DNA of 64,000 bases from positions 4,898,001 to 4,962,000 of the forward strand of contig JBLDXI010000042.1 of the NCBI GenBank assembly GCA_047495785.1. The letters are read 5' to 3'. Position 1 is the first letter of the stretch, and every line of letters starts with the position of its first letter. The stretch comes from Lepidodermella squamata (taxonomy: Eukaryota; Animalia; Gastrotricha). The notes under the pieces were generated by a model, which ran no database searches, had not been told where the DNA came from, and saw nothing but the letters and a program-made list of their open reading frames with translations. Both the position numbers and the translations under genes were made by a program. Positions 538 through 64,000 of the stretch are shown here, in pieces.

Positions 538-716
538 TCGTTAGCGGCGCGCCAAAACAACCACTTTACTATTTATAGATTTTATATGGATAGTACGATC
601 GAGAGTAGAAAAAAATCAGTGCTCAAATGGCCTATCGTACTTTATCATTACGTTCGGCGACTTCAAGTACGATCGAATGAATCATCTAAGTGGTTGTTTT
701 GGCGCGCCGCTAACGG
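538..716. mobile_element. MITE, Tc1/mariner(pogo)-type
   Basis: 29-bp terminal inverted repeat (t/c)cgttagcggcgcgccaaaacaaccactt with one mismatch, TA on both sides (536-537, 717-718), no coding capacity. Confidence 0.8.
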
Positions 717-1559
717 TATTAACTTTTCCTTTAGTTGAGCAGGAACAGTCTTAGGAACAATTTTATTGTTAGGAAATGTTATTTTCGAGCATTTTAATTA
801 TTTGGACGTCTGCTGAAATATGCATTTACTTATTGAAATGGGTGCTGTGAACAAAGTTCAATCGTTAATGCTCAACTAAATTGTCGCTTATTCATTGCGA
901 ATATAAAATAAAGCATTAAAATACAATTCCACCTAAATTTGGAGAACTATGCTAGTTGTGAATAGCTGGCAAGTTGGTCTCGCTACAATACTCATTGTAA
1001 GTTTTAATTGCCACGATATACAGGCGTCTTATTTCCTAATATATTTTCGCAGGATCCAACGAATCCGACGATTGGTTGGCTGCACGAAATCAGGGAAATG
1101 TCCTTACACAACAGCAATCTGAATGGCAGATAAATTTGGTAAAAAATATAACAGGCCTGATGACTTCGTTCAGTGGCGTTTCTTCTAAGAGCGTTTCTAA
1201 AAGTTCTAACAGCAAGAGTCAAGCAAATACTTGGTTTTTTTTGAATAGCCCGACTCCCTTGGAACCAATATGACAAATTATCGCTGAGAAAGAATTGTAC
1301 AGGTATTTGACTTTTTATTTACCATTTCCTCAGTTGATTCTCCAAAAATATGCAAGCTGCAAGCAATGTGATCCACCAAACACCCCCTGTGGCTATGTCC
1401 AAAACTTTTCATAGTCCCAAGGTGAAAAGTCAATCCAGTTCTTCTCGCGGAGCAAGAACTTTCTTTTTATTAATATCGTGAAAGAACGGGCTAAAACTTA
1501 TATTGAAAATGACGCCTATGAGTGATCGAAGCGAGCGTTGTGGGTTCTTCCTTTTGGGT

Positions 1560-1678
1560 CTGAGAAAATAGGGGCCTTGGGACATAAGGGCCCCCTGGGG
1601 ATTATTTTGGGAGGCCCACAAATCGAGGAGCCCCAAGGCATTTGCCTTGTTTGCCTAATGAAAAATCCAGAACTTGCT
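1560..1678 (-). mobile_element. Degenerate relic related to the hAT-type MITE at 16545-16716
   Basis: gagccccaaggcatttgccttgtttgcctaatg resembles the reverse complement of cattaggcaagtagggcagttgccttagggccc at 16560; GGGCCC-rich; left boundary unresolved. Confidence 0.45.
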
Positions 1679-2148
1679 TGCTATTTATTGTTATGATTAA
1701 GCTGTTATTTAGTTTCGAAAATAGCCGAACTATAGCTCTATATTGTATTGTATTATAAGTGTCACACGTTAGACTAACGTTGCACTGCATTAGCCTAAGG
1801 AGGTCACAACATTCATAAATTTTTCTCCAGTTATCACGGTTGGCAGCCACTTCTCTGGCCAGGTTGTTTGGGCATACGATAGTTTCAGGCAGACCCGGTC
1901 TTTCGATTGCCGGGATAAGACTGCCGGGATAGCAGCTATATAGCTCTCGAAACTTGGAATTGCCGCGGTGAAATCAAGACCTGATCGGAATCTAAAATAC
2001 ATAGTCGCATAAAATGACTGCAACTATTTATCGATGAGATTTGCCATGTGGATAAACGTTATACGACGTAAAGGGTTCGCAAATTCACACTGAAATCCAG
2101 GCGATGAAAAAACACATTGAGCCAAGAAAGAATATAAAACCGCGATTG

Positions 2149-2156
2149 TGACGTCA
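2149..2156. promoter_or_regulatory. CRE/ATF palindrome upstream of the second ETS gene
   Basis: Perfect TGACGTCA about 750 bp upstream of the ATG at 2908, with a GATAAG and an ETS-like TTTCCTGT within 25 bp; function inferred only. Confidence 0.35.
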
Positions 2157-2907
2157 TACGATAAGAGCTTCATTTCCTGTTATCATCCCACGATTTCGTG
2201 TGGTTTCCCAGGGTTATATTCCACGTGTATTCCAAGCGCATTATTATTATTTCAGCTTCAAGAGCTTGCCACAGGGTGTGCACTGCCTGGATTGCACCAG
2301 CTAGGTCTTTTCCGTACATCAGGTGCAACAATTTATCCGGCGGCCGTGTCGTGCGTCCGCAGTGTTCGCTTTTTTCCTTCTTTGTCGTCATTTTCGTTAT
2401 TCCTTCATACGCCTTTCCTGTATTTGTATATGCGTGTGTTGCGTTTTTTTCGTTGTTTAACGAAGCCAGCGGCGCCGCCAACAAGTTGGCACGGCTTGCA
2501 CGCGACCAAGCAGTGGCTTTGGTATTACGCGCTTTGTTTGTTATGTTGCTGGCTATGCAGCAGCGATTATCAAGTTTTAAGCCGCGACAACGGTGAGCAA
2601 GAACAAGAAGAAGAAGACGAAGTGAAGAAGAAGAAGAAGAGGCGTGCTTTTTTGCCTCGGCACAAAAACGTCATGAGTATATACCATGTACTGCTGGCCG
2701 CGTGCGCCGGTAGCGCAGGTCTACAAAGCTTTTTATTTTCCGTCGCGCTGCCGCCTCTGCTGCTGCTGCAACGTGCAACAAAAGGAACCAGGTACTCAAA
2801 AGCTGCTGCTGCTGCGACGCTTTTTGCCGCTCGCAGCTCATTAGCCAGCGCCATCCGCTGCCGAGGTTCCGTGTCTTTAGAGGCCTAGAATCCCACGTGA
2901 AACTTAG

Positions 2908-4930
2908 ATGGATTTAAGCGTCAAACATGTCGATCGCAGTTTCTCGGCCGATGACGCCCCGTCTCGATTACAACATCGCCGGAAAGCCACCCACGTTCGG
3001 CGCATCGTAACGAACCCAGGCGCCTCCGAAGAATCGAACAGTGAAGCGAAACGGTCGAAGACTTCATCGAATGAAGATTTAGAATCGGAAGTGCCACCGC
3101 CCACGCTGTCTCAGCCTGATCAACCCGGAAGTAATGCCGTAGCACTTCTTATGAACCTCGTCAATACTTACCAGCAAGGCCCAAACGCGTTATTGCTTCC
3201 ACAGCTGCTTGCTCAGCTGAATGCGTTGACAAGCAACCATCAAGCGTCATTCGAACAAAAGGTGAACAAGATTTCCTGCAAATACTTGGAGTTAAAATAT
3301 CGGCATGCATTTAGGCAGAAGAAAGCTTGAAGAATTAAGAATCGAGGATTTAATAAGAATTCCGCAGGCCTAGATTATCGCCTTTGTCATCGCGGATTTC
3401 ATGTTTTTTCAAAAATTATCATCGCCACTCGTTAAAGTTTTTTCGGAAAATTGCTGAATACTAAATCTCACTATTTTAAACTAGCGAAATATTGCAAGCT
3501 ATTCAATGCGATTTCTGTCGAATTATGGAAATTGTTTGGTTTAGATTTAAATTTTAACATGCGAATTTTTGTTGGGTCTTGGGAATGAACATACTGCTGC
3601 TCTAGTCGGTTTATTATCAAAAACTTCAGAGCCAATGCCAATAGCTAGCAATAATCTCTCATTCGTATGACAAGGAAACAGTAGCACAGTTTCGAGAACA
3701 ATAATAGAGAAATCCTTGGTCTTATGGCGATTCTTAAATCTCGTTTCATTAGGCCTGACGAATAACTTTTCCTGCACCTCTAGATCAAACCGCAAATCAA
3801 ACCATCAGATATTTCTATCGAAACCGGTGGCAGCAGCTCTAAGCCCATCCCAGTGCATAGCCAAAACTCTGCGAAATCCTTCGGCAAAACCTTCCTACCC
3901 CTGACGCCAGCTTCTGGGCACGAAGATGCGGACGACGCGTTGTCGGATGACAATTTAATTCCAACATTGTCGAACCCGGTAAGGGTTAGTTCCGGCGGCA
4001 CCTCAGCAGCTAGTTCATCCTGCTCTCCGGCTTCGATCGCTTCATCGGGTGGCAAGGGCGATGTCCCCCTCCATCGCATGGCTTCGCTGCCATCGAAACT
4101 CGCAGCTGGAGTACCGGAACGCCGCGCTTTTGCCATAGCAAATCGCTTCCGATCAGGGCCGCTGCGACTGTGGATGGTCGCTGGCGATACGCTGCAACTG
4201 TGGCAATTTTTACTACAGCTATTACTCGACACTCCTCTTCTAATTGCTTCACAGCAAGCCACGCCGCCGATTTGTAAGTTAAGGCGTTCATGAGATGAAA
4301 TCGGGTAGATTTTCTGCCGAAACATAGATTGGACTGGGCAGGGCTGGGAGTTCAAAATTGCCGATGCTGAAACTGTGGCGAAGCTGTGGGGCATGTACAA
4401 GAACTGCCCGAGAATGAATTACGCCAAGTTAGCCAGAGGTAAAATTTCAACTTTAAATCTGAAATTAACTAATTTCGTTTCTAGGTCTTCGATTTTACTA
4501 CGGCAAAAACATTGTGGAGAAAACACCTTCAGCGTTCGTCTACAGATTCTTCCATGAAAAAGTGACATCTCAGCCTATTGATGGCTGTCGCTTGAAGCAG
4601 TGCTATGATTACACAATAATGGCCGGGGGTGAACGCGCGCGTCAAGCCATGACTGGCGTAATTTCGGGTCTCGATAAACGACTAACTTTGGGCGATCTTC
4701 TGCACCGGTGTGCCGATGCTAGTTCAAACTCTGCTGTAGCAAGTGATTTGCCTGTCGATCTAACATCTGCTAGATCAGATGCAGAAAACGTAGCTGTGAA
4801 TCCCACCCGATTACTGGCAAATCTGATCACCAGGTAAGACTGCATTTATCATCTGTCTACCGCTTATTTCACGGATTTTCCCTCTTACAGCCTCGATGTG
4901 CCAGAGGAGAACTCACCGGACCGTTCTTGA
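2908..4930 (+). CDS. ETS-domain transcription factor, 5 exons
   Basis: Exons 2908-3261, 3784-4273, 4328-4438, 4485-4833, 4891-4930 join in frame through GT-AG introns; [11 protein letters not shown]...[51 protein letters not shown]...FVYRF is a complete ETS domain. Confidence 0.93.
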
Positions 4931-5200
4931 AGAAACATCGCTCCGTCTGCGGGAGTTTCCGTCTCCAAGTCGGGCCTTGCTCTACACCATCTCTGCGCCC
5001 GCACCATCATGATCTAATCTCCTATCTACAGTAGACGCCATCAGGATAAACTTTTCACTGCTCTCACGGTTCACGTTTCATTCCGCTTCGAAAAGACTTG
5101 CATATAAATTTGATTTTCAAGATTGAAAAATAGTAAAATCTAAGTTTTTCCAATAATAGTTTGAATTTTTATTTGGATAGAAACATGGCACCTTGATACG

Positions 5201-6153
5201 TTATGCCAAAAATAGAGCTCGGGGAATTTTCTTTGCTCTCGCTTTGTCCCGGAAGCGTTTCTTAGGCGAGCCATCATTAGATTGTGAATCACCTTCAGCA
5301 TCGAGGCTTGATCGCTTTCCAACTGCGGATTGGCTGATATCCTCACAAGCCGCAACAGCTTCGAGTGCGTCTTCAGTTCTTTGAGTTGAACAATCTAAAG
5401 GTTCATGCTCATTGAGACTAAAACTCTCTTTCCAATCTCCATTGGGATCAGCTGCTTCATTAGAAATTTGACCATTCACAGAACATTTTGGCTTGTGTAA
5501 CTTCACATGATTTTTCACGTAAGTTCGCAATTTATCGAGAAACAGGACCTGCACGAAAGATGATTAGAAGTTCCTGGAAAATATTGATTCTTATTCTGAC
5601 CTCTTGCCGATCGACGACAAAGAACCATCTGTATTCAGCTTTGATCGCTTTGACAACAGCGAGGAAATCTACGCGGCGGAAACATGTAAAATCCGGGTTG
5701 TTGGCAATCAAGGCCTGCCCACAAAGCTGGACGAATTCGTTGTAGCAATGTTGGCAACGTTCAAGTTCCTCTAGCTCCATTTTCAGGTCTTGCGAGTAAC
5801 ATCGAATAGGCAGCGCGAATTTCGCGTTGCTGACCTTTTTCTATGAATTGGAAGAGATTGTACAAGCTACAAGCCCTCTGAAATGGTTTAGGCCTACTTT
5901 TGGCTGTGGGGCAGACTTTTTGCTGCGAAGAATCAATTTGACTAGAGCGACTAGACCAGCATTGTCGAATACGCGCTCCAAGTCACTTTCATCGAAATTC
6001 TTCAGAATTTCGAAGGTTAAGAAGTTCTCTGGAAAAGATCTTGTTGCGAAACAATACCATGCATGGGATATTATACGAACCTGTTAATTTCTTTGAAATA
6101 GCAGCTTTTTGTACATCGTTTAGCAGCTCGCTATTCGCTACAACAGGATCCAT
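5201..6153 (-). CDS. Uncharacterised protein, 4 exons, with a SAM-like N-terminus and basic C-terminus
   Basis: ATG 6153; three short GT-AG introns (first 6080-6029) link MDPVVANSELL...ENFLTFEILKNFDESDLERVF to ORFs 5532-5780 and 5201-5554. The SAM resemblance is weak. Confidence 0.65.
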
Positions 6154-7486
6154 GTATTTTTACAACGTCAGATACTTATTATATGCAGTTGGCTGAAATA
6201 AGAGTTAGTTGCTAGCTTTTCATCCCCTCTATCGCAGCACTAATTAGCCAGCCGTCATTACATACAACCTTGTAATCGAGATTAGTATACATGTGCATTA
6301 AGCGCGCAGCTTGCTCGTGGATTAATAGCCCTTTCCCACACGGCACACGTAAATTACTAGCTGCTGATTAAGTATATGCTGAAGAATAATACGTTGGCTT
6401 CATGAAAGGAGGCTTATTAGCCCCTTGGGGCATTAGCCATGCGGAAACTCTAAGTTCGAGGTAGATTAGCCGCCTTTAGACTTCTATTGCAAAACCATTG
6501 ATCCTTGCGTTCTTGCCTGATCATGACGGAAAGGAATACATTTGAAAAACAGCTTGCACACGGTTTAATAGCTGGTTACGTTGAGTCCTTAGTAAAAAAT
6601 GAATCTGAGAGGAAAAATAAAGACGACGAAGTATAGACTCTGGCGTTCTCATTAATGCGAGGTAGACATTTATTGGGGCGACATATGATATAGCCTTTTT
6701 GAATTCATTGATTTCGTGATGATTTGGCATTCGGTAAAGTTTAAGAGTTCAGCTAAATAATGTTCACCTAGATATTATTGCAATTTTCGATCTGAAATAG
6801 TTAAAGCGAAACATTGTTAGCTTAACATCTTTCTAATTTCTTTCATTCCGCATTTCCTTTCCTTTTGTGTATTTTTGCGACGGATGAATAGTAGGAATAG
6901 CAAATGGGCCATTATAACACGTATTTTTCTGGACGGATGCCCATTTTTCACCTGATGACTTTGCTGATAGGAATATAAGCGATCCAACTACTATGCGAGC
7001 GGCGCTGAAAGATGAAGTAATACATACATGTATGTTGTGTTTACGAGCCGCGGTGAGCGATTTTGCAGCTTTCTGTCTGTCAATGCTCGTGTTGCCAGGG
7101 TGCGTTGCTAAGGGCGACGCGCATCGCGCACCTTCCATGCGCTACTTCACGTAGCTATATAGCAAAAACTCGTAATGGCGTACATTCGTAAAACTAATAC
7201 TAATACTATAATAACAGTAATAACATTATAAATCGCCCAGGACTGTCGTCGTTCTTTTTCCGATAATGCGAAAAAATGCAATTTGGCTTCTGGAAATTTC
7301 CACGTCGCGTTATTATCTACACTTTTGATCATGATTTGATTCATAATTGATCTCTGGCCCCTTCAAATTCCAAATGATCCTAATAAGATCTCGTATAGCA
7401 TTCGATCTGAGTTTGATCCGACTAATAAGATACAATTTGTTACTAGATTTTTAAATTGTGAATCCTCACTTCTTTTCTTTCAAGCA

Positions 7487-8571
7487 ATGTCGCCACATGG
7501 TCAGGTAAGGTTTTGTGGGCCTGGAGAAGGTTTTGCATTAAACGTTCATCCTATTCTAGGATCAAGGAGCTGTTTGCTCAGATGTCTTTATGCTAATTCG
7601 ATTTGATCGATCGATGCTTCAGGCATTCCGAAATTCGATGGTTAAATCGAAGTCAGTCTTAGGAAATTATGGTGGTCGGTGGTTGACCATTGCGAAGGAA
7701 GCTACCGTAGTCGATGGCGATTGGCCCATGCGTAAAACAATCGCTGTTTTGTCATTTCCCAACCGTGAACGCGCTCGTATGTGGTTCCAATCCGATCCCA
7801 GCTCGAAACAGCAAGATTGGCTCGGCGGCGTTGATGTCGTTATCGTCCCACTTCAGTACAACGCCCCGCGTGAGAAGGATACCTATGTCATGTTGGATGC
7901 AGGTGTTATGGATGAGGAGCGATTCTTGAATGACTACGTCAACGCGCAAATCGATACGCTGCGCCAAAATGGCGCATCGTGCTACGTCGTCGCAAGCAAG
8001 GTGCACGAAAATCTTCGCGGTCTGTGGGTGCCGCGATTCATCGTCATGCATCAGTTCCCATCGTACGAGGCTGCGCTTAGATACTACAGAAACGGTAATT
8101 ATTATAGCTGATTTGCCTAGTTATAATAGTTTGGAAAGCTTGATAACCTGACTCGACTTGATCCTAGTTTGATCCAGGTTTAATCCTGATTCACAAAATT
8201 CGAGTGTCGATGATTACATATTTGATCCAAACTTGAGTTAGTGATCAAATTATGCTTATCAAATTATTTGATCCCAAATTGATCCTGAGTGTTTCCCAGC
8301 TTTATTCCGATTTAAACGATATTAGAATGTGCGATGTTTACCTAATTTGAAGCCTGAATTTCCTAAAATCTTCGATCAAGAATTCGACCTAACTTTTTTC
8401 ACAGCAAAATGAAAAATCTCAACTCGAGTGATTTTACATGAGGCTATATTTTCTTCTTTTTTAGAATCTGGTGAATACGCTCCATTCGCAAACGCCCGTT
8501 ACGCCTCAGCAGCTTCGACCCTTGTCATCTTCCGCCACGAAGCATGCGATCTTTGCGAGCGAGCGGTCTAA
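7487..8571 (+). CDS. Protein with two tandem DUF1330-like (dimeric alpha-beta barrel) domains, 3 exons
   Basis: Exons 7487-7504, 7560-8094, 8465-8571. Two copies of the pattern (YGGRW..VVDGDW..VLSFPNRERARMWF; NGASC..LRGLW..MHQFPSYEAALRYY..EY..FANAR). Confidence 0.85.
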
Positions 8572-9366: not shown

Positions 9367-12300
9367 TCAAGGGTAAAGTATGCACCAGAGTGGGACCGGT
9401 TTAGCGATGAATGTGTATAGAACACCGCCGCTTTCAGCCGTATCATTGTAGACTTGTTTGCCCTGCGCTTTCCACGTCGCGATGGCCTTCATGTCGCGCT
9501 CGCTGAGCGTACCCGGCGCCGGCTTCTCTTCGCCCGTTAACCGGTGGAAAGTTTTGCGTATGTAAGAGCTTACGCACACGCCAGCATTGCCGCCTTTGAA
9601 CGATTTCGAATTCGGGTCAGTCGCGGCTATGTCTAACCGATAACCGGATTGGTGGGACCGCTTCCGGGCCTTGCCGCCTACTTCGTCCTGACCGAGCCGA
9701 TGATCATTGTTTTTCACCTCAGTGCCACCTTTATTAAAAAAATATTAGAAAATAGTTCACTTCAGAAGCTAATAGCTTAAGCAGGCATTATTTCAAAAAA
9801 AACGTTAAACAATGGAAAAAATATAATCGGATTGTGCTTTTTTCCAAAAAAATTCGCAAAAAATGCTATAATTTTGCCCGATGAATCTGGATTGACTGGG
9901 TTGACTGGAAAACTTTGAATCAAATTTTTAGCCCAGTCCATTCACAGGGCTTTCTGACTAATTGGACTTCGACGATTTTTAGAAAATTGAAACTTATTAA
10001 AATACCTATAGGAAAATTTGATATCGCTGAAAACCCCAAAAAGTGAATTATTTTTAGGTGGACACGGCAATTTATATCGGCTATGCACAAAGGGATTTTT
10101 AGGGCAAAAGCTCGAAATTTCCAAATAAAAAATGTAACAAATGAAAAATTCTACCAACTCGTTTTTAAATAGGAATTATGGAATTTTTCGAAAGAAATTT
10201 AAGATAGTTCAGAAAATTCAGTCTTGAAATTTCAATTTTTAATGAAAAGCTTAAAAATTATGGGAAGAAGCAAATAATCCAAGAAAATTGCATTTTTCAT
10301 GAATTAAAAATTAATTTACCGGTGATATAAATATCGTTGCAGCTGCTTTTCCTTTTCAGCGCAATTAAATGTCGAATATTTTTCAATCGAACACCTTCGA
10401 GCGAAACGCATTGTTTAGGCACTTGTTGCTTTCCGCTTTTCTTGTTATTCGCCTGCCGCGTTACCGGTTCAAAATCCGAATCAACATCCGCCACAGTCAA
10501 GCCTTTCGTATCGGCCTTACAGTTAGGCTGGTTAACAGCCGTAATTCCAGCTTTACTCAAAACTCGTAAAGCTACGGGTTGCGTCAATTTTTCGCTGCCT
10601 TTTTCAATCACCCTGCCTAAGGGTTCAACGTAAACAGTTCGATTGTCGATATCGCTCTGATAGCTGCATGAAAATTCGATTGTGGCGAAACGGCTGTAGC
10701 CAACAAACGGGTCGATTTGGCCCTTGGGCACCGGGCAGAAAGGCTCGGAGAATTGGTACTTGTGATCGACGAAAATCACACAGCCGTCACGTGACTCGGT
10801 GTAGCACTGCCGGCGCAAGTTTTCCAACTCGCTTCGCCAGCACGGTTTGAATTCGGGCAGCGTGAAATTAGGCGGGGATGTTGCCGCTTGTTTTTGGCTG
10901 TTATCGCCTTGATGGTGCCATTTCAGGCACGTTTTAGGATCTGTTCGGCCGTAAGCTGCGAAATTGATCTTCATCGTCGTGGCAGTTGGACATTTCAGCA
11001 CGATTATCGAGTTATCGCAGGCGAGCAGTTTTTCTAGATGAATTTAAAAAATAGGAATTAGGAAAAAAAAACAAGCTTATTCAAAGCGGAGGCCGTGTGA
11101 TTTTCGCAATGGAAATTGGCACCGCGACATTTGCGCAAATGACAAATGCGCGAGAAATTAAAAAAAGCTAGCATTCTTTTTAAATAAATTGAAAAATAAT
11201 TAAAAAATTGAAAATACCGCAGGTCCAGGTTCATATACAGACTCCACTCTATTTGGAATTTCGTCCAAGTGGGTATAGAATTTTGTAATTTCCTTCAAAA
11301 TTTGAACAGCCGGTCATTAAAATTCATTAATAACAAGAGTATTTGGCCATGAACAACTTGAAACCCACTGTTGTTCAATTTTCGAAAAATTCTCAAATTT
11401 CTTCAAGGGGTTTTCCTGTCCCTGTTTTCCTGTAACGGAACATGCCGTTGCGGAACCAAATTTCTGAATGATTATTGTGCCTGAAACCATTTTTCAGAAA
11501 AGATGTAAATATAGACGATCGTAATTTATATGAATTATTTTCAAATTCATGGAAAAATTTTAATTATCTCATTTTTCCAATTTTTTCGCTTTACAATTTT
11601 ACGAATTTTACGTGTCATTTTCGCGTGTCATGGGAAATTCAGCTGAGAAAATTGCTGTAGACTTACGCGATATTATGCCTTCAGGCTTTCGGACCAAAAA
11701 ACTACGCGATTGCCGCCGGTCGCCCACCGGAGCCAATTGCTTCAACCCACTAGCACCAACAAAATACGGCCTAACAACAGTCGTCGTTCTTTCAGCCGCC
11801 CTACTCGTCGACATCGCTTGCGTTGTAGTCGTAGTAGTAGTCGTTGGCCGCGTTGTAGTCTTCACCGTCGTGGTAGTAGTAGTAGTAGGCAGAGTAGTCC
11901 TAACTGTAGTCGAGGCCACAGTTGTCGTAGTACTTGGCCGAGAAGTGGTTGTAGTAGTCGTAGTAGTCGTTTTTCTAGTTGTAGTTGTTGTTTGGGCAGT
12001 GGTTGAAGGAGTGGTCGTAGTAGAAGTTGAGGGTGGCCTAACTGTCGTCGCCGTTCTCACCGCGGTTGTGCGAGCCGGGGTGGTCACGCTTGAAATATTC
12101 GTTAATCTCCCCACCGTAACAGCCGCAACCCTAACCGGCCTCGTCGTTGTAGTAATAATACTCCAAATATCCGTCTGGTTAAGGACGGCTACGTTGACGC
12201 CATCATCGTAAACTTTAGTCCTTTGCCCTTCAGTTACAGCGTACCTCCGAGTTGTAGTCACCCTAATAGCTCGAATTGTTGTATTGTTGTATAACTTAAC

Positions 12301-12513
12301 CGGGCGGGGAGTTACAATAACGGCTTTAACCGGTGTGGAATTATTCGCTCGAACAGCCCGAGGCGTTGTAGTAGGTCTCACGTACCGGCTAGTCGAATTC
12401 GTGGCGATGAATGTGAAATCAGTTTCATTCGACGGCCGTTCGATCCAGGTTATGTTAAACGACGTAGTGGATGCGACGAAATTAAGGCAGATCAACGCGA
12501 TGAGTTGCAACAT
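9367..12513 (-). CDS. Secreted protein: signal peptide, Thr-rich mucin region, SUEL/gal-rhamnose lectin domain, C-terminal Hedgehog/DD-peptidase(M15)-like domain
   Basis: Exons 12513-11667, 11033-10320, 9728-9367 join via phase-1 GT-AG introns. MLQLIALICLNFVAS signal; ACDNSIIVLKCP...INFAAYGRTDPKTC...FCP...IEFSC is SUEL-like; then CVSLEGVR...IYITGGTE...SHQSGYRLDI. Confidence 0.8.
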
Positions 12514-14313
12514 TTTAGGATGAGATATTATTGTTGTTGATAGTATCAAATTTTCGTTATTGTATATGTTTTGGGATATATTTCCGCGATATATGCCGTG
12601 AAAAATGGATTTTTCCTATTACAACAACACAATATAGCTGCCGTTGCTGTCGGTATATAATTGACGCGCCAAGTCAGTATAAATCGTAAAAATGCAGTGT
12701 CACAAATCTTCTCGCGCCGGCGTGTAATAAAAATTCGCCTCTTTTGTAAGTATACGCAGATGATATAGCATATAATTCAACTGCGCGTGCGCGCAGATGT
12801 CACATCGCGCGCGCTTCCCCTCGCCTCCCAATAAAATGAATCGCGAACATATTTTCCGACTTGTCATCCATATTATACTATAATATCCATCCGTCCGATG
12901 CATACGTCGTCCGATTATAGCAGGCGATCAATAGTGCTATTTCTGCGAATTTTGATGTGTTAAAACTTTTGTACTGCCTGCGATTGTCCTCGCGCGGGAG
13001 CAAGCGGACGGATATCCGGAATGATGATTCCACTTGCAAGAATGAAATCGCAGCAGAAAATAATATTTCTTGCTCCGGTTTCCTTAGAATTAGGGTTATT
13101 GCGCGTTACATAAGCCTTGCCCGAAATAGAAAGTGATGGCAAAATTGACATCCGGGATTTCTTCAGGAAATCCGGTTGCTTTTGCTTCCGGAGGAAAATC
13201 CCAGGTCCACGCATTCAAGAATTATTGGAAGAAAAGGAAAGTTTTGGAAAATAATTTGGAAAATACAAATAAAACAGATTTTCTGTTTCTTATGATAGAA
13301 ATTTATGATAAATCCTTAAACCTTAAAGCGGTCAAGGCCCGCTGCATCAAATTAACCAAGACCATTTTGGTTAATTCCTTCCCACTCCCGTCGAGTTCTC
13401 GCTATGCCACGACCAGTATCCCAGCTTAAAAACTTGAGTCTTGATCCCAGAGCTTTGGATTTGATTTGATTTGATTTACGGCTTGAATCACTGACCCCTT
13501 TCAATCAATCAAAACCAATCAATGTCCCACTTTCACGGAACTAAATCAATCAAATCAAATCATTGACACCGATAAAAGTTGATCACCAAAATTTTCTTTG
13601 AAGAGCTCATCCTGGGCCCAGGATCGTTGAGAAATGCCTCGCTTAGGACCACACAGGCATCCACATCATGTCAGATGTTTGCGTTTTGTTATGATTTCAT
13701 TAGTGTACCGGTCAATTTATGTTTATACCCATACCAGCAACCTGTTTTCTACTGGCTGGTATATGCGACAAGTTTCAACGTCTGGGCCGATTGCAAGCGC
13801 GAAGTAGGATCCTCGAACTAGGGGATATTTGCGCTGAAAAACGGAATTCAAGTTGAGTTATGAAAAAATGACTGAACTGCGCTCGGCAACTTCATGTATT
13901 TATCAATATTCTGTCAATCGATCTGATTATAATATCATGTCTGCTATTGGTCGTATGACATTTCGGCCCACGACTTTTCAGCCCCGACTTTTTAGTCCCG
14001 TCAATTGAGCCGGAGGACAATTCAGCCCGCGACTTAAGAGCCCATGTTCAAATAAAAATGAGCCCAAAATGTTTATTTCAAAGACGAAATTTCCACATTC
14101 GACATTTTAGCCGCATCTCCGGAGCTAATTGTTCGACATCTCAGCATTCCCTAGGATAGCTGTGCACATATAGAAGTAAAGAAAAACATCAACCTCGTTT
14201 ATTCATAACCACAATTCCATCTACGCATAGTCACATGCTTTGAATACGGCTCTACTCAAACTCTACTGAGCCAAGTCTTTACGATCATATCAATCATTCA
14301 CCTGAGAAGCTGA

Positions 14314-50917: not shown

Positions 50918-50988
50918 GCATCGGTGGTTCAGTGGTAGAATTCTCGCCTGCCACGCGGGAGGCCCGGGTTCGATTCCCGGCCGATGCA
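50918..50988 (+). tRNA. tRNA-Gly(GCC)
   Basis: GCATCGG/CCGATGC acceptor stem, TGGTTCAGTGGTAGA D arm, CTGCCAC anticodon loop, GGTTCGATTCC T arm, downstream T-run terminator. Confidence 0.98.
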
Positions 50989-57983: not shown

Positions 57984-60900
57984 TTAAGCTACCACCGTTT
58001 CCTCCCACTTCGTTTCGATGACTGGGCCTTCTACCACCGTTTCGATGACTGGGCCCTGTTCTACCGTTTCGATGACCGGACCCTGTTCAACCGTTTCGAT
58101 GACTGGGCCCTCTTCGGTCCATTCTTGGTATTGAGTTTCAGAGCTGCCTTCAGACGCAGATCCACTCGAATGGGATGAGCTAGAAGCCGATCTGGATTTC
58201 ACGCGGGATGAGCGAGAAACCGATCTCGACTTTCTGGACTTCACACGGGACGAGCGAGATGCTGATCGGGATTTCACGCGGGATGAGCGGGAAGCTGATC
58301 TAGATCTCACGCGAGATGAGCGAGAAACAGAACGGGATTTCACACGGGATGAGCGAGAAACAGATCTCGATTTTGCGCGGGATGAACTAGATGACTTGCT
58401 CACTTTACGGCCAGAATCGCTCGTAGACTTGCTAGTTCTATGGTGTGTAGTGCGCTTTACAACGCCGGATCTGTGAGAGCTGGAGCTTGCTGAGCCACTG
58501 GAACGCGCTTTCGAGCGCTTGGTTATTTCTCCGCTTGATTCTTTCTCTGAAGATGACGACCGGTTAGAGGATGATAGTACAGACCGGCTATGATTTTCTT
58601 GGTGGGATGAACGATGAATAGAGGGGCGCGGGGTAGATCCTGCCTGGTAGCTGCGCGATGACCTAACACGATGGCTCCTCGATAAACCAGCTGATCGCTT
58701 TCGACGAATTACCCGACGAGAACGGCGGGAACCCTTTTTACGAATCGTAACTCTACGCTTAGCGTGACGCCTTCGCGATCTGCGGACCTTGCGCTTGATC
58801 GTACGCCTGGAGCGGCGCGACTTCGAAGACGAGGTTTTGCTAAGTGATTCTTTACGAGATCTATGTCGGGAGGAAGAACGAGTTAATTTTCCGATGCTAG
58901 ACGTCATATGGTTTCGTTTCGTTGAGTGTTTCGAAGACCGTTTACGACGGATAACACGACGACGGCGCTGCGAATGCCGCGACCGAGAAACAACTTTACG
59001 GCGTGATTGACGACGATGGGAACGACGAACCTTCCGCTTTATAGTACGACGAGACTTACGTGCCGACTTCCTGGACGAGCCATGACGGTGGGTCTTGCGA
59101 GTGACCTTCGTCGAAGAGCGACGATGACGCTTGGTCGAGCGGGTCTTGCGGCTCACCTTCCTGGAAGTGCGGTGACGGCGAGTCGAGCGAGTCTTGCGTT
59201 GGGTACGACGGACCGAGCGCTTGGTGTGCTTGCGGCGATGGACCCTCTTGCTGCGATGATGGCGCTTAACCTTCTTCACAGAGCGACGATGACGCTTGGT
59301 CGAGCGGGTCTTGCGGCTCACCTTCCTGGAAGTGCGGTGACGGCGAGTCGAGCGAGTCTTGCGTTGGGTACGACGGACCGAGCGCTGGGTGTGCTTGCGG
59401 CGATGGACCCTCTTGCTGCGATGATGGCGCTTAACCTTCTTCACAGAGCGACGATGACGCTTGGTCGAGCGGGTCTTGCGGCTCACCTTCCTGGAAGTGC
59501 GGTGACGGCGAGTCGAGCGAGTCTTGCGTTGGGTACGACGGACCGAGCGCTGGGTGTGCTTGCGGCGATGGACCCTCTTGCTGCGATGATGGCGCTTAAC
59601 CTTCTTCACAGAGCGACGATGACGCTTGGTCGAGCGGGTCTTGCGGCTCACCTTCCTGGAAGTGCGGTGACGGCGAGTCGAGCGAGTCTTGCGTTGGGTA
59701 CGACGGACCGAGCGCTTGGTGTGCTTGCGGCGATGGACCCTCTTGCTGCGATGATGGCGCTTAACCTTCTTCACAGAGCGACGATGACGCTTGGTCGAGC
59801 GGGTCTTGCGGCTCACCTTCCTGGAAGTGCGGTGACGGCGAGTCGAGCGAGTCTTGCGTTGGGTACGACGGACCGAGCGCTTGGTGTGCTTGCGGCGATG
59901 GACCCTCTTGCTGCGATGATGGCGCTTAACCTTCTTCACAGAGCGACGATGACGCTTGGTCGAGCGGGTCTTGCGGCTCACCTTCCTGGAAGTGCGGTGA
60001 CGGCGAGTCGAGCGAGTCTTGCGTTGGGTACGACGGACCGAGCGCTGGGTGTGCTTGCGGCGATGGACCCTCTTGCTGCGATGATGGCGCTTAACCTTCT
60101 TCACAGAGCGACGATGACGCTTGGTCGAGCGGGTCTTGCGGCTCACCTTCCTGGAAGTGCGGTGACGGCGAGTCGAGCGAGTCTTGCGTTGGGTACGACG
60201 GACCGAGCGCTTGGTGTGCTTGCGGCGATGGACCCTCTTGCTGCGATGATGGCGCTTAACCTTCTTCACAGAGCGACGATGACGCTTGGTCGAGCGGGTC
60301 TTGCGGCTCACCTTCCTGGAAGTGCGGTGACGGCGAGTCGAGCGAGTCTTGCGTTGGGTACGACGGACCGAGCGCTGGGTGTGCTTGCGGCGATGGACCC
60401 TCTTGCTGCGATGATGGCGCTTAACCTTCTTCACAGAGCGACGATGACGCTTGGTCGAGCGGGTCTTGCGGCTCACCTTCCTGGAAGTGCGGTGACGGCG
60501 AGTCGAGCGAGTCTTGCGTTGGGTACGACGGACCGAGCGCTTGGTGTGCTTGCGGCGATGGACCCTCTTGCTGCGATGATGGCGCTTAACCTTCTTCACA
60601 GAGCGACGATGACGCTTGGTCGAGCGGGTCTTGCGGCTCACCTTCCTGGAAGTGCGGTGACGGCGAGTCGAGCGAGTCTTGCGTTGGGTACGACGGACCG
60701 AGCGCTTGGTGTGCTTGCGGCGATGGACCCTCTTGCTGCGATGATGGCGCTTAACCTTCTTCACAGAGCGACGATGACGCTTGGTCGAGCGGGTCTTGCG
60801 GCTCACCTTCCTGGAAGTGCGGTGACGGCGAGTCGAGCGAGTCTTGCGTTGGGTACGACGGACCGAGCGCTGGGTGTGCTTGCGGCGATGGACCCTCTTG

Positions 60901-63900
60901 CTGCGATGATGGCGCTTAACCTTCTTCACAGAGCGACGATGACGCTTGGTCGAGCGGGTCTTGCGGCTCACCTTCCTGGAAGTGCGGTGACGGCGAGTCG
61001 AGCGAGTCTTGCGTTGGGTACGACGGACCGAGCGCTTGGTGTGCTTGCGGCGATGGACCCTCTTGCTGCGATGATGGCGCTTAACCTTCTTCACAGAGCG
61101 ACGATGACGCTTGGTCGAGCGGGTCTTGCGGCTCACCTTCCTGGAAGTGCGGTGACGGCGAGTCGAGCGAGTCTTGCGTTGGGTACGACGGACCGAGCGC
61201 TGGGTGTGCTTGCGGCGATGGACCCTCTTGCTGCGATGATGGCGCTTAACCTTCTTCACAGAGCGACGATGACGCTTGGTCGAGCGGGTCTTGCGGCTCA
61301 CCTTCCTGGAAGTGCGGTGACGGCGAGTCGAGCGAGTCTTGCGTTGGGTACGACGGACCGAGCGCTTGGTGTGCTTGCGGCGATGGACCCTCTTGCTGCG
61401 ATGATGGCGCTTAACCTTCTTCACAGAGCGACGATGACGCTTGGTCGAGCGGGTCTTGCGGCTCACCTTCCTGGAAGTGCGGTGACGGCGAGTCGAGCGA
61501 GTCTTGCGTTGGGTACGACGGACCGAGCGCTGGGTGTGCTTGCGGCGATGGACCCTCTTGCTGCGATGATGGCGCTTAACCTTCTTCACAGAGCGACGAT
61601 GACGCTTGGTCGAGCGGGTCTTGCGGCTCACCTTCCTGGAAGTGCGGTGACGGCGAGTCGAGCGAGTCTTGCGTTGGGTACGACGGACCGAGCGCTTGGT
61701 GTGCTTGCGGCGATGGACCCTCTTGCTGCGATGATGGCGCTTAACCTTCTTCACAGAGCGACGATGACGCTTGGTCGAGCGGGTCTTGCGGCTCACCTTC
61801 CTGGAAGTGCGGTGACGGCGAGTCGAGCGAGTCTTGCGTTGGGTACGACGGACCGAGCGCTGGGTGTGCTTGCGGCGATGGACCCTCTTGCTGCGATGAT
61901 GGCGCTTAACCTTCTTCACAGAGCGACGATGACGCTTGGTCGAGCGGGTCTTGCGGCTCACCTTCCTGGAAGTGCGGTGACGGCGAGTCGAGCGAGTCTT
62001 GCGTTGGGTACGACGGACCGAGCGCTTGGTGTGCTTGCGGCGATGGACCCTCTTGCTGCGATGATGGCGCTTAACCTTCTTCACAGAGCGACGATGACGC
62101 TTGGTCGAGCGGGTCTTGCGGCTCACCTTCCTGGAAGTGCGGTGACGGCGAGTCGAGCGAGTCTTGCGTTGGGTACGACGGACCGAGCGCTGGGTGTGCT
62201 TGCGGCGATGGACCCTCTTGCTGCGATGATGGCGCTTAACCTTCTTCACAGAGCGACGATGACGCTTGGTCGAGCGGGTCTTGCGGCTCACCTTCCTGGA
62301 AGTGCGGTGACGGCGAGTCGAGCGAGTCTTGCGTTGGGTACGACGGACCGAGCGCTTGGTGTGCTTGCGGCGATGGACCCTCTTGCTGCGATGATGGCGC
62401 TTAACCTTCTTCACAGAGCGACGATGACGCTTGGTCGAGCGGGTCTTGCGGCTCACCTTCCTGGAAGTGCGGTGACGGCGAGTCGAGCGAGTCTTGCGTT
62501 GGGTACGACGGACCGAGCGCTGGGTGTGCTTGCGGCGATGGACCCTCTTGCTGCGATGATGGCGCTTAACCTTCTTCACAGAGCGACGATGACGCTTGGT
62601 CGAGCGGGTCTTGCGGCTCACCTTCCTGGAAGTGCGGTGACGGCGAGTCGAGCGAGTCTTGCGTTGGGTACGACGGACCGAGCGCTTGGTGTGCTTGCGG
62701 CGATGGACCCTCTTGCTGCGATGATGGCGCTTAACCTTCTTCACAGAGCGACGATGACGACGAGTTGTGCTCTTACGCTGGCGACGGGTTACATTCTTCG
62801 AACGAGAGCGGCGGGTCGAGCGCTTGCTGGTGTGCTTGCGTTGAACCTTTCTGCTCTTGCGAGACCTGTGGGTCTTGCGTTGACGGCGGACCGACTTCTT
62901 GGAGCGGGTATGACGAGTGCGCTTGCGTTGGACCTTCCTGCTCTTGCGAGACCTGTGGGTCTTGCGTTGACGGCGGACCGACTTCTTGGAGCGGGTACGA
63001 CGAGTTGTGCTCTTACGCTGGCGACGGGTAACCTTCTTCGAACGAGAGCGGCGGGTCGAGCGCTTGCTGGTGTGCTTGCGTTGAACCTTCCTGCTCTTGC
63101 GAGACCTGTGGGTCTTGCGTTGACGGCGGACCGACTTCTTGGAGCGGGTACGACGAGTGTGCTTGCGTTGGACCTTCCTGCTCTTGCGAGACCTGTGGGT
63201 CTTGCGTTGACGGCGGACCGACTTCTTGGAGCGGGTACGACGAGTTGTGCTCTTACGCTGGCGACGGGTAACCTTCTTCGAACGAGAGCGGCGGGTCGAG
63301 CGCTTGCTGGTGTGCTTGCGTTGAACCTTCCTGCTCTTGCGAGACCTGTGGGTCTTGCGTTGACGGCGGACCGACTTCTTGGAGCGGGTACGACGAGTGT
63401 GCTTGCGTTGGACCTTCCTGCTCTTGCGAGACCTGTGGGTCTTGCGTTGACGGCGGACCGACTTCTTGGAGCGGGTACGACGAGTTGTGCTCTTACGCTG
63501 GCGACGGGTTACCTTCTTCGAACGAGAGCGGCGGGTCGAGCGCTTGCTGGTGTGCTTGCGTTGGACCTTCCTGCTCTTGCGAGACCTGTGGGTCTTGCGT
63601 TGACGGCGGACCGACTTCTTGGAGCGGGTACGACGAGTGCGCTTGCGTTGGACCTTCCTGCTCTTGCGAGACCTGTGGGTCTTGCGTTGACGGCGGACCG
63701 ACTTCTTGGAGCGGGTACGACGAGTTGTGCTCTTACGCTGGCGACGGGTTACCTTCTTCGAACGAGAGCGGCGGGTCGAGCGCTTGCTGGTGTGCTTGCG
63801 TTGAACCTTTCTGCTCTTGCGAGACCTGTGGGTCTTGCGTTGACGGCGGACCGACTTCTTGGAGCGGGTACGACGAGTGCGCTTGCGTTGGACCTTCCTG

Positions 63901-64000
63901 CTCTTGCGAGACCTGTGGGTCTTGCGTTGACGGCGGACCGACTTCTTGGAGCGGGTACGACGAGTTGTGCTCTTACGCTGGCGACGGGTTACCTTCTTCG
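57984..64000 (-). CDS. Giant Arg/Lys/Ser/His/Thr-rich tandem-repeat protein, C-terminal about 2000 aa (start outside window)
   Basis: The frame of ORF 57984-62744 stays open through the 240-bp array to position 64000; ends in Ser/Arg repeats and acidic (EQGPVIETV)-type repeats. Confidence 0.85.
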   Translation of the reverse strand, partial: KKVTRRQRKSTTRRTRSKKSVRRQRKTHRSRKSRKVQRKRTRRTRSKKSVRRQRKTHRSRKSRKVQRKHTSKRSTRRSRSKKVTRRQRKSTTRRTRSKKSVRRQRKTHRSRKSRKVQRKRTRRTRSKKSVRRQRKTHRSRKSRKVQRKHTSKRSTRRSRSKKVTRRQRKSTTRRTRSKKSVRRQRKTHRSRKSRKVQRKHTRRTRSKKSVRRQRKTHRSRKSRKVQRKHTSKRSTRRSRSKKVTRRQRKSTTRRTRSKKSVRRQRKTHRSRKSRKVQRKHTRRTRSKKSVRRQRKTHRSRKSRKVQRKHTSKRSTRRSRSKKVTRRQRKSTTRRTRSKKSVRRQRKTHRSRKSRKVQRKRTRHTRSKKSVRRQRKTHRSRKSRKVQRKHTSKRSTRRSRSKNVTRRQRKSTTRRHRRSVKKVKRHHRSKRVHRRKHTKRSVRRTQRKTRSTRRHRTSRKVSRKTRSTKRHRRSVKKVKRHHRSKRVHRRKHTQRSVRRTQRKTRSTRRHRTSRKVSRKTRSTKRHRRSVKKVKRHHRSKRVHRRKHTKRSVRRTQRKTRSTRRHRTSRKVSRKTRSTKRHRRSVKKVKRHHRSKRVHRRKHTQRSVRRTQRKTRSTRRHRTSRKVSRKTRSTKRHRRSVKKVKRHHRSKRVHRRKHTKRSVRRTQRKTRSTRRHRTSRKVSRKTRSTKRHRRSVKKVKRHHRSKRVHRRKHTQRSVRRTQRKTRSTRRHRTSRKVSRKTRSTKRHRRSVKKVKRHHRSKRVHRRKHTKRSVRRTQRKTRSTRRHRTSRKVSRKTRSTKRHRRSVKKVKRHHRSKRVHRRKHTQRSVRRTQRKTRSTRRHRTSRKVSRKTRSTKRHRRSVKKVKRHHRSKRVHRRKHTKRSVRRTQRKTRSTRRHRTSRKVSRKTRSTKRHRRSVKKVKRHHRSKRVHRRKHTQRSVRRTQRKTRSTRRHRTSRKVSRKTRSTKRHRRSVKKVKRHHRSKRVHRRKHTKRSVRRTQRKTRSTRRHRTSRKVSRKTRSTKRHRRSVKKVKRHHRSKRVHRRKHTQRSVRRTQRKTRSTRRHRTSRKVSRKTRSTKRHRRSVKKVKRHHRSKRVHRRKHTKRSVRRTQRKTRSTRRHRTSRKVSRKTRSTKRHRRSVKKVKRHHRSKRVHRRKHTKRSVRRTQRKTRSTRRHRTSRKVSRKTRSTKRHRRSVKKVKRHHRSKRVHRRKHTQRSVRRTQRKTRSTRRHRTSRKVSRKTRSTKRHRRSVKKVKRHHRSKRVHRRKHTKRSVRRTQRKTRSTRRHRTSRKVSRKTRSTKRHRRSVKKVKRHHRSKRVHRRKHTQRSVRRTQRKTRSTRRHRTSRKVSRKTRSTKRHRRSVKKVKRHHRSKRVHRRKHTKRSVRRTQRKTRSTRRHRTSRKVSRKTRSTKRHRRSVKKVKRHHRSKRVHRRKHTKRSVRRTQRKTRSTRRHRTSRKVSRKTRSTKRHRRSVKKVKRHHRSKRVHRRKHTQRSVRRTQRKTRSTRRHRTSRKVSRKTRSTKRHRRSVKKVKRHHRSKRVHRRKHTQRSVRRTQRKTRSTRRHRTSRKVSRKTRSTKRHRRSVKKVKRHHRSKRVHRRKHTKRSVRRTQRKTRSTRRHRTSRKVSRKTRSTKRHRRSSTKVTRKTHRHGSSRKSARKSRRTIKRKVRRSHRRQSRRKVVSRSRHSQRRRRVIRRKRSSKHSTKRNHMTSSIGKLTRSSSRHRSRKESLSKTSSSKSRRSRRTIKRKVRRSRRRHAKRRVTIRKKGSRRSRRVIRRKRSAGLSRSHRVRSSRSYQAGSTPRPSIHRSSHQENHSRSVLSSSNRSSSSEKESSGEITKRSKARSSGSASSSSHRSGVVKRTTHHRTSKSTSDSGRKVSKSSSSSRAKSRSVSRSSRVKSRSVSRSSRVRSRSASRSSRVKSRSASRSSRVKSRKSRSVSRSSRVKSRSASSSSHSSGSASEGSSETQYQEWTEEGPVIETVEQGPVIETVEQGPVIETVVEGPVIETKWEETVVA
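59116..62745. repeat. Coding tandem array, 22 x 165 bp (55 aa)
   Basis: Unit start recurs every 165 bp; units differ only at one T/G site on the + strand (Lys AAG / Gln CAG on the coding strand). Confidence 0.95.
62761..64000. repeat. Coding tandem array, more than 5 x 240 bp (80 aa), each with an internal duplicated subunit
   Basis: cgagttgtgc recurs at 62761, 63001, 63241, 63481, 63721, 63961. Confidence 0.95.

Follow-up and report, generated by a model that had tools for sequence, protein, structure and literature searches.

The closest described precedent for the protein reported here is rusticalin. Rusticalin and rusticalin-like proteins of ascidians, placozoans and a coral carry an M15-type domain for which a horizontal origin has been proposed, and the rusticalin of S. 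rustica, which is without part of the active site, has been proposed to be non-enzymatic (PMC6339383). A further point of comparison is offered by the Hedgehog ligands. LAS enzymes bind zinc through a His, an Asp and a His, while Drosophila Hh has kept the fold, lost the zinc motif, acts by binding and is regarded as having lost peptidase activity (PMC6027127). Here we describe a gene on a 64,000-nucleotide stretch of the gastrotrich Lepidodermella squamata (GenBank assembly GCA_047495785.1, contig JBLDXI010000042.1, positions 4,898,001 to 4,962,000 of the forward strand; the whole stretch is called the window below, and all coordinates refer to it). Like rusticalin, its product is a secreted protein in which a C-terminal domain, apparently of the MD-clan cell-wall peptidase type, stands on Cys-rich animal N-terminal modules. 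Taken as a whole, the locus is probably best explained as an expressed animal lectin protein with a horizontally gained, degenerate cell-wall domain that is a putative binder. The case differs from rusticalin in subfamily, in partners and in its degenerate site: the rusticalin domain can be identified as M15 from its sequence (phage A500 type, L-Ala-D-Glu peptidase) and is joined to defensin-like repeats, whereas the domain in the window has no Pfam match and is joined to a mucin-like region and a SUEL lectin.

The gene is real, is expressed in the animal and has a three-exon structure, laid out as follows.

9367..12513, minus strand: whole gene, three exons, 640-aa secreted protein (open reading frames, splice sites, clean coding sequence, RNA coverage)
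12513-11667, minus strand: exon 1, signal peptide and mucin-like region
11034..11666, minus strand: intron 1, 633 nt, GT..AG, phase 1 (joint in X1 RNA contigs)
11033-10320, minus strand: exon 2, SUEL lectin and first half of the C-terminal domain
9729..10319, minus strand: intron 2, 591 nt, GT..AG, phase 1, splitting Gly521 of ITGGTE (X1 overhang and uninterrupted orthologue)
9728-9367, minus strand: exon 3, second half of the C-terminal domain, stop TGA at 9369-9367

Once spliced, the coding sequence measures 1923 nt, contains no internal stops and encodes 640 aa. Contigs of the RNA-type run X1 lie over the exons only; depth falls to 0 in each intron and likewise upstream of the gene. They include the intron 1 joint (11033 to 11667), whose ends read CT..AC on the plus strand. 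At the other intron, an X1 contig stops at 9729 and continues with 15 nt, GGTGATATAAATATC, which match the last 15 nt of exon 2 when reverse-complemented; owing to this match the junction reads DIYITG/GTEVKNNDH, which sets intron 2 inside the ITGGTE motif. A contig of about 7 kb from the DNA run, X2, covers the entire locus at even depth, and no paralogues were found within the window. As the gene has introns and spliced RNA, lies among animal genes and keeps its synteny (described below), it cannot stem from contamination. An earlier, sequence-only reading of this DNA had joined three open reading frames (ORFs) into one protein with an intron within ITGGTE, and both statements held: the coordinates were confirmed, the introns are of the GT..AG type, the coding sequence is open, the RNA joint and overhang agree, and all the strings quoted (LSKAGI, CVSLEGVR, LIALKRKSSC, SHQSGYRLDI, CVSSYIRKTF and LWCILYP) were found.

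When exon 3 was compared by phmmer with 1.84 billion representatives, a single true relative was recovered, P0001 (E 2.7e-30, 55% identity), which is located on eukaryote-like metagenome contigs. Four other matches in that search are repeat proteins and were set aside as false positives. The search missed the bacterial family described below because the best-conserved half of the domain sits in exon 2. P0001 has the same order as the window protein, a SUEL-like part followed by the C-terminal domain, and its locus is syntenic, with a DUF1330 gene lying tail to tail and 92% amino acid identity across DUF1330 exon 1. Its intron 1 falls at the same codon and in the same phase but measures 55 nt against 633 nt, and since its SUEL part and C-terminal domain share one uninterrupted ORF, intron 2 is absent there. 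Introns of the related species are tiny at this locus (L001 7900-8000 and 10100-10170; 55 nt in this gene and a few tens of nt in the DUF1330 gene), compared with 370-630 nt at the same genes in the window genome; intron size has strongly changed between the two genomes. The two proteins are 47-53% identical, with a rate of non-synonymous differences (pN) of 0.33-0.38, against 0.06 for the neighbouring DUF1330. The ratio of non-synonymous to synonymous differences (pN/pS) is 0.39-0.43, with synonymous sites saturated; at a value of about 0.4 the gene is constrained though fast-evolving. A word-indexed homologue search (exact 5-mers within a length window) recovered P0001 alone, a scan of JGI metagenomes with P0001 as the query gave no match, and neither did tblastn of the C-terminal domain against phages.

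The depths of the X1 contigs bear on another reading of the gene, in which exon 3 would chiefly belong to a different transcript and its fusion with exons 1 and 2 would be a minor or artefactual isoform. Indeed, an X1 contig over 8464-9632 has a depth of 337, against 7-22 for exons 1 and 2, contig depth being a flat mean per contig. However, this contig is explained by the convergent DUF1330 gene on the plus strand, which splices from 8093 to 8465 into that region and overlaps it with its 3′ end, and we rejected it as a separate exon-3 transcript. In addition, the overhang at 9729 links exon 3 to exon 2, and P0001 carries both halves of the domain in a single ORF. We thus consider a separate transcript for exon 3 highly improbable and treat the three exons as one gene.

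The C-terminal domain spans about 210 aa (residues ~431-640) and is encoded on both sides of intron 2.

10320..10590, minus strand: first half of the C-terminal domain (ALRVLSKAGI..NC, CVSLEGVRLKNIRHLIALKRKSSCNDIYITG), placed by the family profile and alignments
9370..9728, minus strand: second half of the C-terminal domain (GTE, NDH, RKRSHQSGYRLDI, CVSSYIRKTF, VYNDTAESGGVLY, LWCILYP), placed by homology to P0001

By profile, motifs and four cysteines, this domain is assigned as a homologue of an unnamed, Pfam-less domain of about 130 aa found in Actinomycetota. When residues 205-370 of P0001 were searched by tblastn against plasmids, 33 records matched (31 from Streptomyces and one each from Nonomuraea and Deinococcus), the best, in Streptomyces, at E 1e-5 and 39% identity; with the S. 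clavuligerus protein as the query there were 39 plasmid records. The Streptomyces sequences share the motif line ..AGI..SSGNC....CTS...I.......LK.AS.C...(V/I)TGGTE.GH...YSH.NGYK.D....C..(Y/H)I....(Y/F)..E..HWD(I/V).., so that the family of secreted proteins to which the earlier reading had likened the domain does exist, its Streptomyces members reading CTS..I...ITGGTE.GH..SH.NGYK.D...HWDITYY. From 81 domains of bacterial and metagenomic origin a hidden Markov model (HMM) of the family was built. The spliced window protein matches it over residues 484-584 with 32.7 bits (conditional E 7e-12), and P0001 reaches 27.8 bits in its best domain and 31.2 over the full sequence. Cys454, Cys491, Cys514 and Cys572 align with the four bacterial cysteines. 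The actinobacterial proteins (S. clavuligerus WP_003953110.1, here P0006, and the fusions P0031, P0033, P0035 and P0050) are secreted and have the four cysteines and the motif order of the animal copies. In the bacterial copies, which measure about 130 aa, E, H, H, D and H-W-D never vary. The animal copies differ in having L or M where the last His would be, a long linker following the first Cys, and three insertions of about 14, 13 and 13 aa.

The bacterial family is large. At least 450 relatives of the bacterial domain occur in JGI metagenomes, and the ESM Atlas clusters of the family, with 392, 66, 62 and 50 members, are all from Actinomycetota and have no Pfam family. No Pfam or NCBIfam model matches the bacterial family, and the members that we saw carry the label 'hypothetical protein' or a name taken from another of their domains. 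In P0006, P0008 and P0013 a signal peptide is followed by this domain and no other; elsewhere the domain follows one or two PG_binding_1 domains, and in a 571-aa protein it comes at the end, after a GH25 lysozyme domain and two PG_binding_1 domains. In Deinococcus the gene for the domain adjoins, and lies downstream of, an N-acetylmuramoyl-L-alanine amidase gene. On Streptomyces plasmids (L197 175-1890, L204 and L198, listed with Deinococcus) the domain ends GH25 and PG_binding_1 proteins or adjoins a GH25 gene. These fusions and neighbours place the family in cell-wall biology, and the cell-wall link suggested beforehand is borne out by the PG_binding_1 and GH25 lysozyme fusions.

The fold of the family was approached through its bacterial members. 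An AlphaFold2 (AF2) model of the S. clavuligerus domain (P0006:38-169, from a 35-row alignment) has a predicted local distance difference test score (pLDDT) of 93 and a predicted template modelling score (pTM) of 0.86. Searched with Foldseek against the PDB, the model finds almost only Hedgehog N domains (E 0.02-0.1, probability up to 0.87), followed by 1lbu (the Streptomyces zinc DD-peptidase), VldE, MepA, LysB4 and the RB49 peptidase. With VIA-align, ShhN is the best structural match at Z 7.3 (100 residues, 3.2 A), ahead of VldE (6.2), MepA (5.4), 1lbu (5.3), LdcB (4.9), VanX (4.8) and Ply500 (4.5); the best 46 rows, with Z from 7.3 down to 4.3, are all of the LAS fold, and the first unrelated fold comes at 3.7. 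The model thus resembles Hedgehog N domains and zinc peptidases of the M15 and M74 types, with no comparable match elsewhere. The nearest ESM Atlas clusters outside the family are Peptidase_M15_3, M15_2 and VanY, at template modelling (TM) scores of 0.55-0.60, the language-model neighbours are Peptidase_M15_3 and HH_signal, and close AFDB cluster representatives bear the automatic UniProt names M15A and M15B ('Peptidase M15A C-terminal domain'). The register of the motifs agrees with the fold, including the helix, with ITGGT on ISGYR and SH.NGYK.D on S.H..G.A.D. Although the scores are singly modest, they are unanimous and the register agrees; the LAS (Hedgehog/DD-peptidase) fold, a central antiparallel beta-sheet with helices packed on it as in ShhN, 1lbu and MepA, is therefore accepted for the family. 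For the animal domain we accept the same predicted fold, carried over by homology from the bacterial model.

Several results weigh against this assignment. The AF2 model of the animal domain itself, from a three-row alignment, has a pLDDT of 36 and is unusable; the Foldseek E values against the PDB reach just the range given above, and all VIA-align Z scores lie below 8. No Pfam M15, VanY or HH_signal match was obtained even at E up to 10 with the window pieces, P0001 or the Streptomyces protein, and PDB sequences searched by phmmer and by profile with the animal and bacterial domains gave no match. Against a MepK-type M15 profile (E. coli MepK, 80 enterobacterial loci, and Microviridae and Rhodobacter-phage peptidases), the animal pair stayed at noise level by hhalign and hmmsearch (Prob 0.2%, a level matched by 69-123 of 500 shuffles), and the bacterial family profile reached Prob 0.1%, though in the expected register. 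The best local alignment of the window protein with the M15 profile, at a noise-level score, sets VGGKARKRSHQSGYRLDIA on vgG.AkkSqHlkgtAaDis. Neither NCBIfam nor PHROGs matched the C-terminal domain in the window pieces and P0001, and the ESM Atlas was uninformative for exon 3 and P0001. An M15/Hedgehog-like domain, as proposed by the sequence-only reading, is thus supported by the predicted structure of the bacterial member and was not recovered by the sequence-level Pfam, PDB and hhalign checks.

Within the LAS fold, the family resembles different branches in different ways. With M15A, M15_2 and M15_3 proteins (MepK, 1lbu, VldE) it shares the fold class (TM 0.55-0.60, Z 5.3-6.2), H-x6-D and a cell-wall context; however, GGTE stands in place of the M15 SGYR, and the Arg that binds the substrate carboxylate is therefore absent. 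The domain is not of rusticalin's M15C type, as it has no M15 or PHROGs match and Ply500 reaches only the Z of 4.5 given above against the family model. With ShhN it shares the motif TE..GH..S.H..G...D, alike in order and spacing. Unlike Hedgehog, the window domain leaves HH_signal silent, has no Hint or autoprocessing domain and no lipid-modification signals, and differs in its Cys pattern and in having none of the conserved acidic residues of the calcium site.

The domain was likely acquired horizontally by the animal lineage from microbes, to judge from where its relatives are found. The family has hundreds of members in Actinomycetota, some that are apparently fungal, and two in related animals, and this distribution favours transfer. 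A phylogenetic tree weighs on the other side: in it the two animal sequences are each other's closest relatives (support 100), and their very long branch attaches at the base of the bacteria, where the branching order is not resolved. As the pair is not nested in a bacterial clade, the direction of transfer is argued from the distribution. The horizontal origin put forward earlier is accordingly favoured by the distribution, with one other animal copy and a family of Actinomycetota, while the tree names neither donor nor direction. The same tree suits a vertical history, in which the domain would be an old eukaryotic branch of Hedgehog/DD-peptidases that most animals have since lost or altered too far for it to be recognised. 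The animal pair lies outside all the sampled bacterial sequences, animal Hedgehog N domains are the nearest solved structures, and eukaryotic (fungal) members seem to be present in some AFDB and Atlas clusters. The apparently eukaryotic entries, whose organisms are guessed from accession ranges, are the AFDB representatives A0A226D8K3, A0A814K0J6, A0A1Y1Y282 and A0A2C9KIF9 and Zoopagomycota members of an Atlas cluster. However, the phmmer search with exon 3 gave one relative among all the representatives, Pfam HH_signal is without a match, and the four cysteines together with CxSLxGxR, LKxKSxC, GGTE and WDIxY are common to the animals and Actinomycetota and are not found in Hedgehog. We regard vertical descent as quite unlikely, and horizontal acquisition remains our preferred explanation.

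Two short segments of the C-terminal domain correspond to the metal site of LAS enzymes.

9631..9654, minus strand: H546-x6-D553 (HQSGYRLD), equivalent to bacterial SH.NGYK.D, the LAS zinc motif
9382..9390, minus strand: L634-W635-C636, at the position of bacterial H-W-D

The first was correctly read beforehand as an H-x6-D motif. The window protein has it as H546-QSGYRL-D553 and P0001 as HQNGYRID, its counterpart SH.NGYK.D is invariant in the bacteria, and both the M15 HMM and hhalign set it on S.H..G.A.D. A phospholipase D-type (PLD-type) HKD motif was also considered for HQSGYRLD and rejected, as there is no Lys and no GSxN. E524, H546, D553, W635 and GGTE are conserved in both animal copies, and the His of the bacterial GH is perhaps H530 of NDH, present in both animals and displaced by a 3-aa insertion, although this equivalence is uncertain. 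The last His, the third zinc ligand, which sits in H-x-H in LAS proteins and in H-x-D in this subfamily, is invariant in 34 of 34 rows of the bacterial alignment; it is Leu634 in the window protein and Met in P0001, so the LWC noted at this position from the letters reflects a loss common to both animal copies. The Asp after the Trp is Cys636 in the window protein and is kept in P0001 (PLWCILYP vs PMWDILYP), whose MWDILY the family HMM aligns with hWDity. The full set of seven polar positions that do not vary in the bacteria (E, H, H, D, H, W and D) is thus not retained in the window protein. With two of the three zinc ligands left, the animal domain is likelier to be non-catalytic or altered at its metal site. 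Two points count against the loss of the third His: it hinges on how the sequences are aligned over an insertion of 13 aa, and P0001 has another His-Trp 30 residues upstream.

The residues that remain would also fit a domain that is still an active metallopeptidase or amidase, with H530, Glu524 or a residue of an inserted loop as the third ligand or catalytic group. The protein would then lyse bacteria as a secreted enzyme, anchored to mucus through its lectin. E524, H546, D553, W635 and the NDH His are retained in both animals, the gene is under purifying selection, and rusticalin-like proteins keep full M15 sites and have been proposed to be active (PMC6339383). However, the His that is invariant in the 34 bacterial rows is Leu or Met in the animals and the next Asp is Cys here, zinc in LAS enzymes needs H, D and H, and Drosophila Hh, without the motif, is regarded as having lost its activity (PMC6027127). 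We therefore consider an active enzyme unlikely, and a non-catalytic or altered site is the reading that we retain.

The N-terminal part of the protein is composed of three modules.

~12513-12460, minus strand: signal peptide MLQLIALICLNFVAS, residues 1 to ~18, predicted from hydrophobicity
within 11667..12513, minus strand: mucin-like region, Thr/Pro/Arg/Val-rich, residues ~20-282, with 7 N-x-S/T sequons
10666..11031, minus strand: SUEL/rhamnose-binding-type lectin with an insertion, residues 284-405, with 8 Cys, AAYGRTD and EPFC

Residues 284-405 are assigned to the SUEL/rhamnose-binding lectins by their 8-Cys frame, motifs and profile. The Pfam SUEL_Lectin match is weak (E 3.9e-4, 21.2 bits against a gathering cut-off of 31.4). 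A two-sequence lectin profile, made from the window protein and its orthologue, finds the rhamnose-binding lectin 5h4s in the PDB at E 5.6e-7 and the rhamnose-binding lectin (RBL) domains of latrophilin at about 2e-4, with no other match at E <0.2. With such lectins (CSL, latrophilin RBL) the window domain has in common the 8-Cys frame, YGR and (D/E)P.C; it differs from them by an extra 25-40 aa after the third Cys and by a Pfam score below gathering. The mucin-like region contains 31% Thr after the signal peptide, with poly-Thr runs. This stretch is missing from the orthologue P0001, whose exon 1 encodes 62 aa (signal peptide and linker). Of the mucin and SUEL lectin combination first proposed, the lectin therefore stands in both proteins, by profile, 8 Cys, YGR and EPFC, whereas the mucin-like stretch is present here and not in the relative.

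Other features of the window include the convergent neighbour and a tRNA gene.

7590-8093 and 8465-8571, plus strand: DUF1330 gene (Pfam E 2.6e-14), convergent neighbour
50918-50988, plus strand: tRNA gene (Rfam 66.7 bits)

The 371-nt intron of the DUF1330 gene is confirmed by an RNA contig, at an RNA depth of 337. The DUF1330 domain is typical of bacteria, and this gene may itself be an old transfer. Upstream of the lectin gene, at 13447-13830, DNA contig depth rises to 600-6500, against about 83 elsewhere, and many divergent contigs end there; the segment resembles a repeat of high copy number or a piece of a transposon. At 57984-64000 the minus strand has a 1586-aa ORF in which a 165-bp unit occurs 22 times with 99% identity, and the array continues as 240-bp and 87-bp repeats to the end of the window. 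GC content here is 0.57-0.62, with GC and AT both strongly skewed, and the array appears to be repetitive coding DNA that expanded very recently.

The history of the gene may be pictured as follows. The domain would have been gained horizontally and joined to the lectin before the two host species split. Afterwards three insertions and, in the window genome, a spliceosomal intron would have been gained; the last metal-binding His would have been lost, and the window copy would also have lost the neighbouring Asp. The protein may be located in a secreted or mucus layer, where its lectin could bind microbial or self glycans of the rhamnose or galactose type, while the degenerate peptidase cleft could hold the peptide stems of peptidoglycan without cutting them. 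Two-site capture or agglutination of bacteria would be the result. We infer that the role of the domain is non-catalytic binding of the microbial cell wall. More specifically, and as a tentative idea that we would rate as possible though rather doubtful, a captured cell-wall peptidase domain, disarmed by loss of a zinc ligand, may have been reused for peptidoglycan recognition beside a rhamnose-type lectin on a mucin stalk.

If that idea is true, the protein would represent a new class of secreted pattern-recognition protein made from a dead LAS enzyme, and a small, much more recent parallel to the proposed route from bacterial DD-peptidase to Hedgehog ligand. Beside rusticalin, the gene would be a second, independent example of MD-clan peptidase domains entering animal immunity-like proteins, and it offers a clean, intron-bearing and transcribed case of a putative microbial cell-wall domain fused to an animal lectin and a mucin-like region. 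As one of the two related species is without intron 2, intron gain or loss within the apparently transferred domain becomes datable. The locus also exposes a large, uncharted actinobacterial family of the LAS fold, with hundreds of members, whose closest solved structures are Hedgehog ligands. Finally, the apparent natural loss of a zinc ligand may serve as a model for how a peptidase cleft turns into a binding site, the same question that is debated for Hedgehog.

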